DNA of 17,195 bases, taken from sequence record MK054204.1; one strand, 5' to 3'. Of this stretch, positions 3,455 to 17,195 are shown piece after piece. Position numbers and translations under genes: made by a program. Within the stretch, counting starts at the first letter, position 1. The number at the start of each line of letters is the position of its first letter. The notes below the pieces were generated by a model. The model searched no databases, had not been told where the DNA came from, and worked only from the letters and a program-made list of their open reading frames with translations.

Positions 3455-3477
3455 AANAGGAAAAAATTNATNNTGAC

Positions 3478-3491
3478 TTTATAAAGGGCCT
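3478..3491 (-). promoter_or_regulatory. T9-like promoter (TATA box TTTATAAA) for the A82-B251 operon
   Basis: AGGCCCTTTATAAA about 24 nt upstream of the A82 ATG. Confidence 0.8.
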
Positions 3492-3756
3492 ATTCAGACT
3501 TGTATATCCTATACGCTACAACCGCCGGTACANTTATCAGTACAAGTATATAGAACAGTGGGACTAGTTGTAAGATGGGTGCGTTTGAGCTTCCTACGTA
3601 TTGCGGGTTAGGATTAGTTTGCGTCACAGTACCTGAAACAGTTGTGAAAGATGGTGTGGTTAGTAGAGTGACATAACTAACAATTGGCGATAATAACGCT
3701 ATACCTAAAACGATGAAGATAGCCAAAAAAATTATTTGCTTTAAACTGATTTCCAT
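3490..3756 (-). CDS. vp3: Minor capsid protein VP3
   Basis: Two hydrophobic helices; C-terminus [25 protein letters not shown] paralogous to VP1; directly downstream of VP1. Confidence 0.92.
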
Positions 3757-3850
3757 CCCTCACACCTTTACTCTTTGTAAATCTTGTACGCCACTACGGC
3801 GGGGACTATGATTAAGACTAGGATATAGAACAGTGGGACTAGTTGTAAGA
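3548..3850. repeat. Perfect 28-bp direct repeat shared by vp3 (3548-3575) and vp1 (3823-3850)
   Basis: ATATAGAACAGTGGGACTAGTTGTAAGA present twice, 275 bp apart. Confidence 0.95.
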
Positions 3851-4031
3851 GTGTGGCGTTTGTGCCGGTTACGCTAGGTGCAGTACCTGACGTTAAGCTA
3901 TTTACTTGGCTAACGATGACGGGCAATAGTACTATGCCTATAAGTATAAAGATGAATAAACCTAGAATGGCACCTATGTTAGTTGCTTCNCCCTTTCTTA
4001 GCTTTGGTCTTTGCAATAGTACTAGGCTCAT
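3768..4031 (-). CDS. vp1: Major capsid protein VP1 precursor (short leader; predicted mature N-terminus EATNIG)
   Basis: [32 protein letters not shown] (the X is a GGN codon = Gly); NAT glycosylation sequon; in-frame stop at 4038-4040 fixes the ATG at 4031. Confidence 0.94.
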
Positions 4032-4323
4032 ACTTGGTCAATAGGGGCTTATCGCTAAGCTTTTTAAACCCCTCCAGTTCTGAATTCAGAATCTGAATTT
4101 GTTTAGAGTTCTCTTTAATTTTAGCATATAACGTNCNNCCTTCNTTGTANANCTCTATGTAGCCTTNNTCNTTNANNATNCNNANNTGNCTTAGCACNGT
4201 NGCATAGCTCAAAAGCAGTGNGTGAGAGATGAGAGAAGCAGAGAGTACGTAGTTTTCCACAATAAGCTCTAAGATTTTACGCCTTAGTATCTTAGCCCTA
4301 ATCTCATTAGCGTTATAAGTCAT
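3979..4323 (-). CDS. Winged-helix (ArsR-like) protein, SSV1 B115 homolog
   Basis: [34 protein letters not shown]; ATG at 4323 overlaps the C166 stop (ATGA); many Ns inside. Confidence 0.85.
4061..4075 (-). promoter_or_regulatory. T1/T2-like capsid promoter embedded in the B115 gene
   Basis: GGAGGGGTTTAAAAA about 30 nt upstream of the vp1 ATG; resembles the SSV1 vp1 promoter. Confidence 0.75.
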
Positions 4324-4820
4324 GGCCCACCCCTTATCANTTTCACCACTTCCCAAATGAGGATGAAATTAACAATCAAAACGAAAGCCGTNANNAANGG
4401 CCCTACNNNCGGTACATTCGCTAACAATCCTATAGAAGAAGTGAATATAGATATTAGATACCCTAGCACACTATCGGTTGTCTGAAACATCCACGTTAGC
4501 CAACCTATCAGGTAAAGGATTGGGGCCAACCAACTAAAGCTAATACTGAAGAGCGTTACACCCGGTATCGTTACACCCGGCAAAGTTAGTCCCGGAAAGT
4601 TAGCCCCTAGGATACTGAACGGCGGTATAAGTGTCACGGGCCCCCATAACGTAATGGGTGGCCACCCCACAGTCCATACAATTGATGACGCTAAAGCTTG
4701 GTCAAAACTATATGAAGGTATCGGTGGAATTGACGGTGGCGTTATACCGCCGTAAGCACCTACCATTAACGCTAGAAAGACGTCAAACAATAGGACGTAT
4801 ACTATTAGCTTAGTCCCCAT
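4320..4820 (-). CDS. Membrane protein, SSV1 C166 homolog
   Basis: Start MGTKLIVYVLLFDVF at 4820 after GGTGGTAGGG gives 166 aa; Pro-rich, multiple hydrophobic segments. Confidence 0.88.
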   Translation of the reverse strand: MGTKLIVYVLLFDVFLALMVGAYGGITPPSIPPIPSYSFDQALASSIVWTVGWPPITLWGPVTLIPPFSILGANFPGLTLPGVTIPGVTLFSISFSWLAPILYLIGWLTWMFQTTDSVLGYLISIFTSSIGLLANVPXVGXXXTAFVLIVNFILIWEVVKXIRGGP

Positions 4821-5052
4821 CCCTACCACCTCCTAAGATTAACCCGGCTATCAGACCCAAAATGATCGCAACGCCCCAAAAAAGCGGTAAGAAATTCATG
4901 AAAGTTAGGGTGAAAGTTGAGGCTATACCTACAAGAATCGCCGGTACTTTGCCCGCCATCTTGTATGTTAGTCCCATCATTCCTATGATAATAACGACCG
5001 CAATNACCGGCCCTAAACCNGTNNNTAANGCNANNNNNATTGCGTCCGTCAT
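4810..5052 (-). CDS. Small membrane protein, SSV1 B78 homolog
   Basis: 80 aa, three hydrophobic segments; lies between VP4 and C166. Confidence 0.82.
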   Translation of the reverse strand: MTDAXXXXLXXGLGPXIAVVIIIGMMGLTYKMAGKVPAILVGIASTFTLTFMNFLPLFWGVAIILGLIAGLILGGGRDGD

Positions 5053-7433
5053 TATTCCTCCCTCCCCATAAACCTATCNACNANNGTNTTNGCTAANAGT
5101 ANCGCTATNCCNANNANNAAGANNTANAAGATGTACCANGGTANTANCCCNANNTATGCAGTGGCGATTAGCCCCATAACCGCACCACCCGATGCACCCG
5201 CACTACCGCCGAATTTCCAACCTAGTAACGCGATAAGTACCGTAACCACAATCCCGATGATTTCCGCCCATGGTTGGTATTGAGAGAAATTGTAAAGTGA
5301 GGAGTTAGGCAATATGTTATTACTAAACGGCTTAGTGTAGTTGTAGTTAAGAGTAGTGGTATTCACTGTGGTGGTGCTGCTTACTGTAGTAGTATTTGAA
5401 ACGCTAATGTTTAGTATCTGATATGTAACGCCGTACCAGTCTATATCTACTAACTCATAAGGACTATAGGATAGTTTTAGCGTTACGCTTCCGAAACCGG
5501 AAGCGTTTGTGTAGCCCGTTACATATTGTGTCAATGTTGATGGGTTAGTCCCGATCAATATTATATATGCTTGGTTAGCCGTAGCACTTTGTAAAACGAT
5601 ACCGCTAACGAAGAACCAATTCAGTACAAGTTTCCCCGCACCGTAGTAGAAGCCTAATCCAATAACCGGCGAAGTGTTTGATATAGTTAATACACCACCC
5701 GCACTACTGCTTATCTGAACATAGTTACCCGTTATAATCTGAAACGTTAGCGTATTAACGCTATTATTAACGAATTTTAACCCGGTTAAGGAACTATTAA
5801 ACGGAATTAGATAGTTGTTCCCGTTTTGAGTGATTATTACTAGGCCGTCATTTGCGGACAACCAATACGCTTTGAACTGAACTATAGCGTTTGTAGTTAC
5901 CATTTTAGCATAAGCAAAAGCCAAAATAGTAGATGTTTGCGTAAACGCAGATTGAGTTACGTTAGCTACGGGGCTATTATAAGTGAATTGAAACGTTATC
6001 GTTATTGTTTGCCCTAATATCCCGATTTTAGGATAAGAAGTAACGAATAACACGGGGTAACTCTGTGCGGGCAATACTGTGAAACTACCGCTATAATCTA
6101 TCATTGATATTGGGCCTTCAGTTACGATTACTGTATAGTAATAAGTAGTAGGTACTTGGACTATAGGCGTAAAACTATAGGGTATCGGGTACGTAACACC
6201 GTTTATTGATACGTTAGCCCGCTCTGATACTGCCGTATAATAACCTAGATTTGAGGGATAACCTATAATGTTAGTTAAAGTGAAACTGATTGTTTGCCCG
6301 CTTAGATAAGTCCCGCTAGGCAAATTGACGCTAGGATATAGTGCATAGCCCTCAACAATTACGGGTATAGTTAGGTTGTAGTTTATCGTTACTTGAGATG
6401 TAACGATTTGAAGCCCTATGGTTACGTTTACGTACCATGTTGGTGGGTTACCTTCGATTGGCCCCGTGTAAAGTAAATATAATCCGTTTGACTTCCCTAA
6501 AATGTTAAAAGTGCATGCTAAGCCTTGTTGTATACCCGTTATTGTAAAGTTTTTCTGTGAAACTATGCCCGATATGCTATATAATGCACCTGAAATGTTT
6601 ACGGGATTCCCCGCACCCGCATAGGCCATTAAGAAATGATAGATGTTATACGATAATGCGAAATAACTAATAGTCAGTTGTGCCGTAACTTGTGTAAAAT
6701 ATTGATAACGCATTATCACCCACTGACCGTACCCAAAACCCGGCCCAATATTCTGAGCGTCAATAACATAATTACTATTTACGGTATTCAACGATAGGCC
6801 CGGTATTATTGAAAAAGTCTTTAGAGTACCGTTATAGTAATAAACGTAAAGTTGGTTTGAAGCGGGTAAGTACCAGAACCCTAAACCTATTTGTTGCCCA
6901 ACACTGATTGAGCCCACAGACACGTTTAACTCTTTCACACCGTCAAAGTATACAAATAACCTATACGTTGGGAAACTCCCTTTTTCCATATAAACCACAA
7001 TCCCATCGGAAGCGTAAGGTAATGCGGGTGCATAGCTACCCGTAAAGCCTGAAGGGAAATTTACACCGTAGCCTATGGCGATTGAACCGTAGGATCCGGT
7101 GTTGCTAGATGAAGCTAGCAACCATGTGACGTTTAGAGCGATTTGTGATGATGAAAGAGAAAGAGATACGTTATTACTAATATATGCTTGATTCGGCAAA
7201 ACTTGGAGGTAGTAAGTGTTGTATATCGAAACGTAAGTTGGGTTAAGCCAAGGTGCATTAGAGAGCGTTGAACCGTTAAGAGTTTTACTTACTGAACCCC
7301 CATTTACCGTTATAGTTTGAGTATAAACTCCCACACCGCTATTATTAGGCCCTCCTCCACCTATAAGTAAAGCTAAGGAGTTGAGAGAAAAAAGAGATAT
7401 AAAGAAAATAGCGAATAATAGTCCCCACTTCAT
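5052..7433 (-). CDS. vp4: Adsorption/tail protein VP4, SSV1 C792 homolog
   Basis: 793 aa; signal peptide; Asn/Ser/Thr/Tyr-rich beta-type body with many N-x-S/T sequons; C-terminal TM segments; first gene of the structural operon. Confidence 0.92.
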
Positions 7434-7456
7434 TAAGCGATAAAAAATTATGTGAG

Positions 7457-7470
7457 TTTATAAAGGGCCT
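7457..7470 (-). promoter_or_regulatory. T7/T8-like promoter for the vp4 operon
   Basis: AGGCCCTTTATAAA about 24 nt upstream of the vp4 ATG (leaderless). Confidence 0.8.
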
Positions 7471-7688
7471 TAGTCTATCAAACGCCATAGTAAGTCTATT
7501 ACTGCCTTACGAAATTTGGGGCTTAAGTACATTGCAATCCCTAAAGAGGCTAAAAAAATTGCTAAGGCAATTTCCGGAGCGTATTGAACATACCATGGAG
7601 GTGGCGAATAAGGTGGCGAATAAGGAAAAATAATTTTCCCCTGAACAGATGCATTTACTGGGCCGAAATTAATACCCGAGGATGACAT
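7470..7688 (-). CDS. Small membrane-anchored protein, C124-like (PPWY motif plus TM plus basic tail); candidate immunity protein
   Basis: 72 aa, PPPWYVQYAPEIALAIFLASLGIAMYL then KFRK; own BRE/TATA 23 nt upstream of the ATG. Confidence 0.65.
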   Translation of the reverse strand: MSSSGINFGPVNASVQGKIIFPYSPPYSPPPWYVQYAPEIALAIFLASLGIAMYLSPKFRKAVIDLLWRLID

Positions 7689-7726: not shown

Positions 7727-8635
7727 TTAGACAATATACACTAGAATTAATGGTGTTTCTGTGTAACTAAGTTGTAAGGTTCCCGATATTTGAGCACTAC
7801 TACTTGACGTGTAGGCATTCGCGGAAAATGAAGGGCTACTGGACAACCAAGCAAAAGCCCATGCATAATTACTACTAATATAATTATTTGCGATAGGATA
7901 GTTTGTAGCGTATTTTATAGTTTCATACCCTACTGCAGTAGCGGGACTTCCAATTATGTTAAATGATATTCCGCTAAAGGTTTCGTTAGGAATTGGGTAG
8001 AACAAAATTGATTTGTTCACTCCGCTCTGGTAATAACCGGGTGCCTCACCCATCACTAGAGCAGAATATGGAGTAAAACTGATTCCGGTATTATAGGTAT
8101 ATGAAAAACTTCCATCTGAGAATTGTGCAACTACATTACCGTTAGAAAGGTAAAGATATATGTTCATAGTTGTACCCGCGAACTGGCTATACGGATATTG
8201 ATATGATACCAATGGATGAGCGTTGTTATTTACCACCAGATACACAAAAAGTAGCACGTATTTCACACTTTGATTTTCCAATAAATCAACTCCCGCTTGC
8301 AAGAAAGTTGTGCTTGCCCCATTACCAATAGTATACGGTGAAAGAGCCACCCAAAAGGCATACATGTTATCATACCAGTATTCATTAGGATTATAATAAT
8401 ATGGTATTGAAGATGGGATTGGCACAGAGATTGAGGCATATGAAGCCGGTTGCACTTGACCGTTATTAGCAAACTCAAACACATACCCTAAAAGGTTTGA
8501 ATCAGTTGATGATGAAATTTGATTTATCGGTATCGGTGATGATGGCGGTATTATTACTCCTGCAATTGTTGGAGTTATTAAAAGCGATAGTAACGCTAGG
8601 GATAGGGTTAGAAGGGCTAGAAGGGACTTTCTCAT
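7727..8635 (-). CDS. Secreted protein at the SSV1 A291 position; putative G1 (eqolisin-like) glutamic peptidase, toxin candidate
   Basis: Signal peptide MRKSLLALLTLSLALLSLLITPTIA; motifs SNLLGYV, AFWVAL, FLQAGVD, ALVMGEAP; no C-terminal anchor seen. Confidence 0.7.
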   Translation of the reverse strand: MRKSLLALLTLSLALLSLLITPTIAGVIIPPSSPIPINQISSSTDSNLLGYVFEFANNGQVQPASYASISVPIPSSIPYYYNPNEYWYDNMYAFWVALSPYTIGNGASTTFLQAGVDLLENQSVKYVLLFVYLVVNNNAHPLVSYQYPYSQFAGTTMNIYLYLSNGNVVAQFSDGSFSYTYNTGISFTPYSALVMGEAPGYYQSGVNKSILFYPIPNETFSGISFNIIGSPATAVGYETIKYATNYPIANNYISSNYAWAFAWLSSSPSFSANAYTSSSSAQISGTLQLSYTETPLILVYIV

Positions 8636-8658
8636 TTGGAATAGAGGAAAAATAGAAC

Positions 8659-8672
8659 TTTACAAAGGGCCT
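8659..8672 (-). promoter_or_regulatory. T3-like promoter for the 302-aa secreted protein
   Basis: AGGCCCTTTGTAAA about 24 nt upstream of ATG 8635. Confidence 0.65.
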
Positions 8673-9048
8673 AACTAACGCAGATATTATGTTTTTTGCA
8701 AACATGGTCTAGGGTTGAATCAGTGTTTCTAAACTCCTTTTTGCATATGGGACAAGTCTTTGCATGCTCGGTGTATCGGATGTGTTGTTTCAGACTAACT
8801 GATGAAGAAAATGGCATTAAGCAAAGGGGACAGACGTAAGGCGATACTGCTTTACTTGTCAGTAACTTATAGAGATAACCGCTTTCATCTAACAACTGGG
8901 GGTTATGGATTAACGCTTTAACAATAGCCCTAATTATTCTTTTCTGTTCCGGCGTCAGACTGTGGTATCGTTCCAGTTCTTCTAAAGTCACGTGAATCGT
9001 AATCCCCTTATGGTTACTCCTCAGGTGCGTTTTACTGCCTGACTCCAT
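8671..9048 (-). CDS. Tandem C2H2 zinc-finger protein, SSV1 B129 homolog
   Basis: CPLC..HIRYTEH and CPIC..HVCKKH; ATG at 9048 after GGAGGG. Confidence 0.9.
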   Translation of the reverse strand: MESGSKTHLRSNHKGITIHVTLEELERYHSLTPEQKRIIRAIVKALIHNPQLLDESGYLYKLLTSKAVSPYVCPLCLMPFSSSVSLKQHIRYTEHAKTCPICKKEFRNTDSTLDHVCKKHNICVS

Positions 9049-9650
9049 TCCTATCCCTCCAACAGTAGTTGTAAAACGCACACTCTAGGCATTCACTATC
9101 AGGCTTAACTTTTTTCGGCGGTAAGATGTTTTCCTCAACTGAAATCCCGAAAGCGTTAGCCCTAGCCTCTAAGTCAGTCTCTGAATAATCACGTTTAATC
9201 TCTTCCACCCTACCATCCGCATACACGATTATTAAATACCCCGCCATAGCATTAGCCATTTCAATGTAATAGTTAAGTTGTCTGAGGTAGTTGTTGAGCC
9301 TAACGTTATCCAGTGATTGCTGATGCGTATACTTCAACTCGTAAACCGTTTGCTCTTCTTTGTCGTAAACGTCCACTTTGCCTACTATTTGAAACCCTAA
9401 AGCCGTCTTCCGTTCAACCCTCTTTTCAACCTCAAAGCCATGCTTTNCTAAGTATTGATTGCAAACGCATATGAAGACCTGAACCTATGTGCATCCTCAT
9501 TGTAGTTTGTAAATTCTGTTTTATTTTACCGTTATGTCTCATTAGAAAACTTTGTCGAAGGCATCTACTAAGCTCAGTAACCCAGATCGTCTTAGTATCG
9601 TTAGTAGTTATCATTTCATAATTATATAATATATCAATGAGTCTNCTCAT
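9032..9650 (-). CDS. cas4: Cas4-like (RecB-family, Fe-S) nuclease; apparent frameshift at N 9447 is probably artefactual
   Basis: Track ORFs 9432-9650 and 9032-9376 join on removing the N at 9447 (205 aa). Motifs RC, GSGLH, GKVD, YELK, QLNYY and CLECAFYNYC all present. Confidence 0.85.
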
Positions 9651-9946
9651 NNTTTNCTCGCCCTCTTATGCCTCCTAATCGTCAAAGTATTCCAACAAAC
9701 TACAAACGCCTCTATCACACTATCATAATAAATCATCGATGTGGGGGCAAAGTGCAATACTAAAATTGTTATAAGAAGTAACGTAGCTAAAGAAAATTTA
9801 TAGAACGCTAATCGCAAAGGCGTTTCAATGAATTTCCTNGCAATTGCATTAACCTCTCTCACTCCCTCAATTCTAAGCCCTAATACCGTTGTAAAATAAT
9901 CGTTAAAGTGCATACCATAGAATGCTAATAATTCCGCTATCATCAT
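9647..9946 (-). CDS. Membrane protein, SSV1 C102-like
   Basis: FNDYFTTVLGL...E.NA...LRLAFYKF pattern; ATGA overlaps at both ends. Confidence 0.78.
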   Translation of the reverse strand: MMIAELLAFYGMHFNDYFTTVLGLRIEGVREVNAIXRKFIETPLRLAFYKFSLATLLLITILVLHFAPTSMIYYDSVIEAFVVCWNTLTIRRHKRAXKX

Positions 9947-10074
9947 TCTCTCACCCTGAAGTANANATAGAAATATTCTAGCGTAAACTTGCTCTGCATA
10001 TGCCCACTAAGCAAATGCTCAACCACTTCCCTTCTTTTCCTAAATATACCGCCACAACGTAGACACTGATACAT
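9943..10074 (-). CDS. C2H2 zinc-finger protein, SSV1 A45 homolog (43 aa; not in the ORF track)
   Basis: Hand translation MYQCLRCGGIFRKRREVVEHLLSGHMQSKFTLEYFYxYFRVRE; TAATG and ATGA coupling to its neighbours. Confidence 0.88.
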   Translation of the reverse strand: MYQCLRCGGIFRKRREVVEHLLSGHMQSKFTLEYFYXYFRVRE

Positions 10075-17002: not shown

Positions 17003-17195
17003 TTGGGCGAAAAGCAACGTAGATATAAATTCGGCGATTATCTCTTGAGGGAAAGAAAAGGCCGGTATTACGTCTATAAGTTGGAAACGATAAACGGTGA
17101 GATAAAGGAGCGTTACGTTGGCCCTTTAACTGACGTTGTTGAANCNTATCTAAAAGAAAAAGAGGGGGTATTAGGGGGATTCCTCCCCCTAACAA
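17003..17195 (+). CDS. int: SSV-type integrase, N-terminal part int(N); not in the ORF track
   Basis: TTG start after GTGAGAGG; [47 protein letters not shown] resembles the SSV1 integrase N-terminus; 193 nt plus bases 1-2 restore the frame into int(C). Confidence 0.93.
17171..17192. repeat. 9-bp hairpin immediately before att
   Basis: TTAGGGGGA-TTCC-TCCCCCTAA. Confidence 0.8.

Follow-up and report, generated by a model that had tools for sequence, protein, structure and literature searches.

Hosts that are chronically infected with archaeal viruses can be made to kill their uninfected neighbours, in a manner that has yet to be explained. In fuselloviruses, toxins of the T3 kind are encoded between a gene of the B129 type and the gene for the end-filament protein VP4, a position that holds a291 in SSV1 (Sulfolobus spindle-shaped virus 1), b310 in SSV9, p29 in SSV11 and p30 in SSV13. 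DeWerff (2021) showed that plasmid-borne expression of B310 or p29 alone yields supernatants by which lawns of S. islandicus without virus are inhibited (PMC8628083), and Abshier (2026) found that SSV1 needs a291 to form halos and needs it neither for replication nor for virion formation (PMC13431529). Here we describe the gene at this position in SSV12 (Fuselloviridae, Alphafusellovirus; Mutnovsky volcano, Kamchatka), whose complete circular genome of 17,195 bp, MK054204.1, is the window that was analyzed.

Several properties of the described toxins are of importance for the comparison. The signal peptide is needed for activity both in B310 (PMC8628083) and in A291 (PMC13431529), and a swap of residues 25 and 26 at the cleavage site of A291 (A25L/L26A) abolishes function (PMC13431529). 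The p30 toxin of SSV13 inhibits cells infected with SSV9 and SSV17, and producer cells that express a toxin are protected from the same toxin added externally (PMC8628083). B310 runs near its full predicted mass (PMC8628083), so that loss of a long propeptide is not to be expected for this allele, which is unrelated to the SSV12 protein. Concerning the mechanism, the two papers that define these toxins go no further than a 'hydrolase-like' fold resembling a glucanase, which was proposed because Foldseek matched the structure to 3AXD, a GH16 glucanase (PMC13431529). The main texts of both papers do not name SSV12 and do not propose a peptidase (PMC8628083, PMC13431529).

The toxin locus of SSV12

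In SSV12 the order B129, 302-amino-acid gene, 72-amino-acid gene and VP4 is found on one strand. The gene of interest is:

7727..8635, minus strand: toxin-locus gene of SSV12 (an allele of T3 'gene 1'), an ATG-initiated open reading frame (ORF) of 302 amino acids, stop codon included.

A toxin gene lies likewise between B129 and VP4 in SSV1, 2, 4, 7, 9, 10, 11, 13, 17 and SSV-L. The full ORF of 302 codons is unbroken in 5/5 viruses of the SSV12 type and in one chromosomal copy. In SSV15 (MK054207, L012 2501-3250) and SSV21 (MN496307, L019 2471-2915) the interval from B129 to VP4 is devoid of a toxin gene, which identifies the toxin as an accessory gene.

The product is a homologue of A291 of SSV1 (P0008), which matches the SSV12 protein at E 7e-21 with 35-39% identity. 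Comparison of profiles using hhalign gave a probability of 99.9% for the SSV12 type against the A291 type and of 97.1% (E 6.5e-11) for the SSV12 type against the p29 type of SSV11, the latter over columns 50-193 and thus outside the signal peptide. The p29 type in turn matched the SSV10, SSV13 and SSV2 types with at least 98.6%. With the same method no sequence link to the SSV12 superfamily could be detected for the B310 type, B276 of ASV1 and the Yellowstone allele NL01B.C01.03. Judged by sequence and predicted structure, the SSV12 gene appears to be an allele of a known kind of fusellovirus toxin, for which a protease mechanism, apparently unpublished, is plausible. A first-pass annotation of this DNA had linked the locus to secreted killing by chronically infected Sulfolobus, and the experiments with B310, p29 and A291 (PMC8628083, PMC13431529) show that this was correct.

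Relatives of the protein are few. Among the 5.8 billion and 1.84 billion proteins searched only a few dozen were found, none of them with a Pfam domain. An exhaustive phmmer search of the 1.84 billion representatives retrieved 10 proteins at E <= 0.001, and a profile word search retrieved 15 (0 with a Pfam domain). All relatives with a named source come from fuselloviruses or Saccharolobus. Taken with the one chromosome from beyond the genus, the hits describe a family restricted to fuselloviruses and the chromosomes of Saccharolobus. Scans against Pfam, PHROGs and NCBIfam were uninformative, with PHROG 24951 (unknown function) as the only match, and both phmmer and profile hmmsearch against the sequences of the PDB returned noise only. 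In the NCBI record of S. shibatae B12 the A-291 protein carries the name 'Peptidase A4 family'. The UniRef entries of P0001, P0004, P0007 and P0022 are named thermopsin (A5); no model reproduced this name, and no Pfam family matches these proteins. In the metagenome relatives P0011, P0012 and P0013, which belong to the SSV12 type, the cysteine content is unusually high; the SSV12 protein is free of cysteine. From the sequences, this richness suggests another host or environment, or stabilization by disulfides.

Signal peptide and sequence motifs

The following parts of the gene are relevant for the analysis of the protein:

8561..8635, minus strand: signal peptide, residues 1-25 (MRKSLLALLTLSLALLSLLITPTIA), predicted cleavage after A25.
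8297..8299, minus strand: codon of Q113, the candidate catalytic Gln (FLQAG), placed by hhalign onto Q53 of scytalidoglutamic peptidase (SGP).
8045..8047, minus strand: codon of E197, the candidate catalytic Glu (SALVMGEAP), placed by hhalign onto E136 of SGP.
7991..8038, minus strand: hypervariable loop, residues 200-215, directly after E197-A-P, defined by allele comparison.

The protein starts with MRKSLLALLTLSLALLSLLITPTIA followed by GV, and in this N-terminus the n-, h- and c-regions that make up a signal peptide can be recognized (MRK, a core rich in Leu and Ala, and TPTIA before the predicted cut with G after it). The signal peptide is nearly identical to that of A291, and the N-terminal segment beginning with MRKSLLALLTLSLALL is the most conserved stretch among all toxin alleles. 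In the AlphaFold model residues 2-19 form a helix, which is followed by a linker of low confidence. SignalP 6 was reported to be positive for all 13 non-redundant toxin alleles (PMC13431529). The three regions and the A291-like N-terminus bear out the signal peptide that had been seen in the first reading of the sequence.

The mature protein would consist of 277 residues with a mass of about 30 kDa. Only 15 of its residues are charged or ionisable (3 K, 0 R, 1 H, 4 D, 7 E). Cys is absent, Ser, Tyr and Asn are abundant, and three sequons for N-glycosylation are present. Such a composition is typical of proteins that face hot acid and suits, as far as can be judged from the sequence, an acid-exposed secreted protein. 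We consider it very probable that the SSV12 product is a secreted antagonistic factor.

The first reading had also listed six motifs as reminiscent of the G1 (eqolisin) family of glutamic peptidases. All six are located at the residues and in the order given there: SNLLGYV at 46-52, ASISVPIP at 67-74, AFWVAL at 93-98, FLQAGVD at 111-117 (with Q113), ALVMGEAP at 192-199 (with E197) and ETFSGISF at 218-225. The spacing of 84 residues between Q113 and E197 agrees with the earlier count and falls within the range of 81-95 for characterized and putative G1 peptidases, obtained by subtraction from Table 1 of PMC3009609.

Similarity to G1 glutamic peptidases

The G1 profile used for comparison consisted of 10 sequences from the supplementary alignment of PMC6154417, namely SGP, aspergilloglutamic peptidase (AGP), one further fungal, five archaeal and two bacterial sequences; Q53 and E136 are invariant in this alignment. 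Alignment of the profile of the toxin superfamily with the G1 profile by hhalign resulted in a score of 32.8 (P 6e-4, probability 28%, 158 columns). Using 23 sequences without signal peptides the score increased to 35.4 (P 2e-4, probability 46%), and restriction to the 13 sequences bearing the Gln/Glu dyad gave 37.5 (P 1e-4, probability 58%). The 8 dyad-less sequences alone scored 15.4, which is no signal. As controls, reversed profiles scored 12-14, the G1 profile reached a maximum of 17.1 in 34 shuffles of its columns, and 100 column shuffles of the toxin profile had a mean of 10.6 with a standard deviation of 2.1 and a maximum of 20.5. Depending on the alignment method, the score against G1 varied between 23 and 35.

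The residue-by-residue pairings were taken from two printed hhalign alignments. SNLLG is paired with SNWGG, LQAG with LQTG (Q113 on Q53) and SALVMGE with NAEFIIE (E197 on E136), and in the trimmed alignment WVALSP is paired with WVGIDG, which places W95 on W39 of the G1 enzymes. These sequence comparisons indicate that the toxins share a distant common ancestry with the G1 peptidases; the signal is real but weak, and it is centred on the alleles that keep the dyad. That the SSV12 protein itself is a distant relative of the G1 family is in our view reasonably likely.

Conservation and loss of the Gln/Glu dyad

The 10 sequences of the SSV12 type have diverged to about 30% identity, and only 20 of about 278 positions are invariant among them. 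Both Q113 and E197 belong to these positions; counting the sequences that cover the respective position, Q113 is kept in 8/8 and E197 in 10/10. In the SSV11 type both dyad residues are kept as well (5/5). Among polar residues, only Q113, D174 and E197 are conserved and thus candidates. Throughout the superfamily very few positions are conserved, and these include A114, the neighbour of the Gln, and A192, which precedes the Glu by five residues. The motifs go beyond chance because Q113 and E197 are invariant among such diverged sequences and because the score against the G1 profile is far above the shuffles.

Other members of the superfamily have the following residues at the two positions:

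SSV1 A291: Glu at the Gln position, Ser at the Glu position.
P0007: Gln at the Gln position, Ser at the Glu position.
SSV10, SSV7 and SSV-L type: Leu at the Gln position, a gap at the Glu position.
SSV13 p30: Tyr at the Gln position, Ala at the Glu position.
SSV2 ORF305: Leu at the Gln position, Thr at the Glu position.
P0022: Leu at the Gln position, Glu at the Glu position.

For G1 peptidases the dyad has been reported to be strictly conserved (PMC3009609).

Predicted fold

An AlphaFold2 model of the SSV12 protein was built on a 17-sequence alignment. The model (mean predicted local distance difference test score, pLDDT, 85; predicted template-modelling score, pTM, 0.81) shows an all-beta sandwich after the signal helix. 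Assignment of secondary structure by DSSP placed Q113 within the strand of residues 111-120; E197 is the last residue of the strand 191-197. In a Foldseek search against the PDB all matches were concanavalin A (ConA)-like jelly rolls with low template-modelling (TM) scores. The top match was the lectin-like protein 9h9s (E 1.6e-5, TM 0.43/0.56), the GH16 glucanases 1cpm, 1axk, 3axd and 1mac occupied ranks 2-5 (E 3e-5 to 1.5e-4), and the glutamic peptidase neprosin (7zva) ranked 7th (E 1.8e-4) with an identity of 14%, the highest of the list. Galectins and LNS domains followed lower among the matches. A Foldseek search against the viral structures of BFVD revealed generic jelly rolls only. The beta-sandwich expected from the first reading was thus found, since the model belongs to the ConA-like class that includes the G1 peptidases.

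A second model was available for P0017, which is 97% identical to the experimentally tested toxin p29 of SSV11 (pLDDT 74). The top three PDB matches of this model are all entries of SGP (2ifr, 1s2b and 2ifw; E 1.9e-6 to 5.9e-6, TM 0.5 on the target), and the next PDB match is more than 10-fold weaker. The list for P0017 also contains, at ranks 5, 9, 22 and 24, YncM of B. subtilis (4hfs) and the secreted 'protease CPAVM1' (8xai). On the basis of the model, these matches point to another poorly characterized group of secreted proteases on the same fold.

A hypervariable loop beside E197

The SSV12 protein differs from the 95%-identical chromosomal protein P0001 at 16 alignment positions, 12 of which are located within residues 200-215, including an indel of two amino acids. 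Among six copies of the gene, 32/57 variable sites of the nucleotide alignment fall within codons 191-220. The pLDDT drops below 50 at residues 203-208. Two alleles of this loop circulate among the viruses and chromosomes from Mutnovsky.

Proposed mode of action and alternative explanations

From sequence and model, the SSV12 protein is probably a divergent, G1-like acid endopeptidase. As judged from its relatives, a T3-type promoter would produce a leaderless and probably abundant mRNA; the product would be exported and cut after Ala25, releasing a protein of 277 residues into the hot acidic spring water. There it would inhibit or kill Saccharolobus cells that have no virus or carry a different one, and the carrier with its chronic infection would profit. 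In G1 enzymes the Glu activates a water molecule with the assistance of the Gln, and E197 and Q113 may play these roles in the SSV12 protein. The enzyme would then be a pepstatin-insensitive endopeptidase at acid pH, with exposed surface proteins of the target cell, for example surface-layer (S-layer) proteins, pili or binding proteins, as putative substrates, and the loop 200-215 beside E197 could set the specificity for the target or for immunity. As a whole, this picture of an exported T3 toxin with a ConA-like sandwich, an acid endopeptidase site formed by Q113 and E197 and a specificity set by the loop is a tentative one, to which we attach slightly less than even confidence. The same grade applies to the catalytic activity of the SSV12 protein taken by itself, and that proteolysis is the toxic act is a more doubtful assumption.

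A number of results weigh against this reading. The match to Peptidase_A4 (PF01828) for which the first-pass annotation had suggested a check does not exist at the level of hidden Markov models (HMMs): the SSV12 protein, 17 relatives and their consensus gave no match to PF01828, to any other Pfam family or to NCBIfam even at E 10, and a purpose-built G1 HMM scored every toxin at no more than 5 bits. The hhalign probabilities to G1 are just 28-58%, and they were obtained with merged profiles only, as each toxin subfamily alone showed no hhalign signal to G1. Further residues that are invariant in G1 are lost: D43 is replaced by S99, E132 by L193 and the YxAWYExxP strand (Y64, W67, E69, P72) by KYVLLFVYLVV. 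The alignment of Q113 and E197 with Q53 and E136 holds, and the match to the family HMM and the remaining invariant residues do not. The structural comparison is similarly divided. SGP is the best match of P0017, which represents the SSV11 type; it is absent from the top 50 PDB matches of the SSV12 model, where the lectin-like 9h9s and GH16 enzymes are on top. The dyad is broken in A291, P0007, the SSV10 type, SSV13 p30, SSV2 ORF305 and P0022, and two of these dyad-less proteins have documented effects: growth inhibition depends on A291, and p30 acts as an inhibitor of some infected strains (PMC13431529, PMC8628083). Toxicity within the superfamily thus does not always require the dyad, and catalysis may not be what makes these proteins toxic. 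The protection of producers by expression of their own toxin (PMC8628083) is no obvious property of a protease either.

The activity of A291 and p30 without the dyad is the main argument for a non-catalytic toxin, a ConA-like lectin or binding module which attaches to a glycan or protein on the target surface and either blocks growth or triggers dormancy. The putative target would be an S-layer glycan, a pilus or a transporter, and the Gln/Glu pair would either be left over from an ancestor or belong to the binding site. The lectin-like best match of the SSV12 model (9h9s) and the galectins and LNS domains further down the list fit such a module; the protection of producers fits masking of a receptor, and the hypervariable loop fits a recognition surface. 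However, Q113 and E197 are strictly invariant at about 30% identity, where no more than 20 of about 278 positions are, the similarity to G1 is centred on the dyad alleles (37.5 versus 15.4 for the dyad-less ones), and no sugar-binding motif was identified. We therefore regard pure binding as possible and on balance unlikely. A glycoside hydrolase of the GH16 beta-glucanase type which trims glycans of the S-layer or the cell surface has been suggested for A291, B310 and ORF299 of SSV10 by the Foldseek match to 3AXD, the top match for A291 (PMC13431529), and glucanases at ranks 2-5 of the SSV12 list would agree with it. The absence of the catalytic strand motif E-x-D-x(x)-E in 23/23 members of the superfamily led to the rejection of this reading. 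There is also no conserved acidic pair on one strand, the TM-scores of the glucanases are 0.26-0.32 on the query with several targets being circular permutants, the published superposition has a root mean square deviation of 10 A and a TM of 0.45 (PMC13431529), and for the SSV11 type SGP outranks all glucanases. A glucanase is accordingly very unlikely.

The position of the gene next to that for the end-filament protein VP4, the co-expression with coat-protein genes in SSV1 and an earlier suggestion of a role in docking or release, cited in PMC8628083, could speak for a virion-associated or morphogenetic factor which is not a toxin, for example a maturation protease for VP1 or a protein that assists budding. 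The first-pass annotation had kept VP1 maturation or egress as an alternative. Yet SSV1 without a291 replicates and forms normal virions (PMC13431529), SSV15 and SSV21 have no gene at the locus, and intact copies persist in chromosomes without the rest of the virus. Because of the deletion phenotype of a291 and the natural absence of the gene this alternative was abandoned; its probability is lower still than that of a glucanase.

A wider version of the endopeptidase reading is a virus-borne radiation of G1 peptidases, in which the SSV12 and SSV11 types are active acid endopeptidases, A291 and the SSV10, SSV13 and SSV2 types are pseudo-enzymes, and chromosomal copies form killer or immunity islands. 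In this radiation the pseudo-enzyme alleles would have kept their toxicity or gained a role in binding, and the loop beside the Glu would set the specificity. The fixed-site chromosomal arrays would then resemble the orphan toxin/immunity arrays of bacteria. We consider this scenario speculative, and doubtful in its full extent. If true, the proteins would be the first viral glutamic-peptidase toxins and provide the first molecular mechanism of virus-mediated killing in archaea. The conserved Gln/Glu pair makes the mechanism addressable by two mutants, and the natural alleles with and without the dyad are ready controls. The loop and the chromosomal arrays hint at an arms race in which the specificity of the toxins and immunity to them are at stake, which could explain the nested cross-killing network among SSVs.

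Promoter, neighbouring genes and annotation of the record

The toxin gene is surrounded by the following features:

8659..8666, minus strand: predicted T3-type promoter box A, TTTGTAAA, with a spacing as in the mapped box A of SSV1 T3.
8671..9048, minus strand: B129-type C2H2 zinc-finger gene, upstream flank, conserved in fuselloviruses.
7470..7688, minus strand: ORF of 72 amino acids, 'gene 2' of the toxin cassette, downstream, with one hydrophobic segment.
5052..7433, minus strand: VP4 end-filament protein gene, 793 amino acids, downstream flank, with the N-terminus at the annotated VP4 start of SSV1.

A TGTAAA box is located 23 nt 5' of the ATG of the SSV12 toxin gene, with a spacing equal to that of box A of SSV1 T3. 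As the mapped transcription start of SSV1 T3 lies 1 nt before the ATG, the SSV12 transcript is predicted to start at the ATG or 1 nt before it and hence to be leaderless. The promoter region (8636-8670) directly adjoins the stop codon of B129. In most SSVs an ORF of about 110 amino acids similar to B111/C113 is inserted between B129 and the toxin gene; SSV12, SSV1 and SSV2 are without it. A B129-type gene was found in 58 fusellovirus records by tblastn, and the Pfam family B129_C2H2-zf matches the chromosomal copies of this gene. The 72-amino-acid ORF accompanies the toxin gene in the cassettes of chromosomes as well as in viruses; no antitoxin effect was seen for the corresponding genes of SSV9 and SSV1 (PMC8628083, PMC13431529).

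The annotated coding sequence (CDS) of the toxin gene in GenBank, AZG03043.1, covers only codons 134-302 (7727..8236; the last 169 codons). Two ORFs on the opposite strand, 8212..8331 and 8509..8655, are annotated over the toxin gene and are probably spurious. In MK054213 and MK054219 the toxin gene is intact and is annotated as two CDS. The same kind of annotation error, since corrected, affected SSV9, where B252 became B310 (PMC8628083). The VP4 gene is concerned as well. Its ORF reaches an ATG at 7433, and the resulting N-terminus MKWGLLF...LIGGGGPNN corresponds to the annotated VP4 start of SSV1. GenBank places the start 33 codons downstream, at 7334, and an ORF of 47 amino acids (7345..7488) is annotated over the true start. 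Furthermore, the record contains 80 isolated N bases (3457-5154, 9447-9966 and 17144-17146), none of them within the toxin-gene region, which lead to X residues in the C-terminal membrane anchor of VP4 and in several small ORFs. The scattered N bases look like positions of the deposited consensus that were called with low confidence.

Toxin cassettes in host chromosomes

P0001 is encoded in the chromosome of the Kamchatkan strain S. islandicus M.16.27 (CP001401.1, L021 4600-7550), in an array of about 3 kb without a provirus. This array is flanked by VKOR and Peptidase_C15 on one side and by DUF973, RibD_C and Tricorn on the other. It comprises a C-terminal remnant of the B310 type, a C108 copy, a B129 fragment, an intact SSV12-type toxin with its 72-amino-acid partner, and the N-terminal remnant of a further toxin, for which the SSV-L type is the best match. 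The Icelandic strain REY15A (CP002425.1, L024 3580-7910) has a different array at the same site, with an intact allele of 50% identity, and S. caldissimus (AP025226.1, L023 6300-9250) carries an SSV12-type ORF of 296 amino acids in tandem with the 299-amino-acid toxin gene of P0020. Across the arrays we found intact toxins of the SSV12 or SSV11/13 type with their partners, B129 fragments and an N-terminal remnant of the SSV-L/SSV2 type. The arrays, which are not described in PMC8628083 or PMC13431529, look like killer or immunity islands.

Comparison with known systems

With the T3 toxins A291, p29 and B310 the SSV12 gene shares the locus, a length of about 300 amino acids, a near-identical signal peptide, the predicted beta-sandwich and a small membrane-protein gene downstream. 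The SSV12 allele is known here from its sequence, and the activity data belong to A291, p29 and B310. In contrast to A291, SSV12 keeps the Gln/Glu pair; to B310 there is no detectable sequence relation, and from most SSVs the locus differs by the missing B111-like ORF between B129 and the toxin gene.

The reference set for the G1 family comprised SGP (2IFW/1S2B), AGP (1Y43), pepG1 of Alicyclobacillus and archaeal homologues from Caldivirga, Vulcanisaeta and Acidilobus. The SSV12 protein resembles these enzymes in its predicted secretion into acid, in the predicted beta-sandwich, in a Gln/Glu pair that aligns to Q53/E136 with a spacing of 84, and in the order of the motifs S-N-x-x-G, W-V-x-L/I-x-x, L-Q-A/T-G and A-x-x-x-x-E. 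Unlike them it has no PF01828 match, no D43, no Y-x-A-W-Y-E-x-x-P strand and no E132, it carries about 70 extra C-terminal residues which form further strands, it has no evident long propeptide, and it is encoded by a virus. Many members of the viral family have lost the dyad, whereas that of G1 peptidases is strictly conserved (PMC3009609). The known prokaryotic G1 enzymes are active at pH 3-4 and 60 C (PMC3009609).

GH16 enzymes and ConA-like lectins (3AXD, 1CPM, 9H9S and galectins) share with the SSV12 protein the jelly-roll sandwich and its concave sheet, and differ in the GH16 catalytic motif, which the SSV12 protein does not have, in an identity of only 7-10% and in low TM-scores. Neprosin (family G3, 7ZVA) possesses a Glu-Glu pair and a large prodomain, and it is like the protein proposed here in being an acid-active peptidase on a related sandwich.

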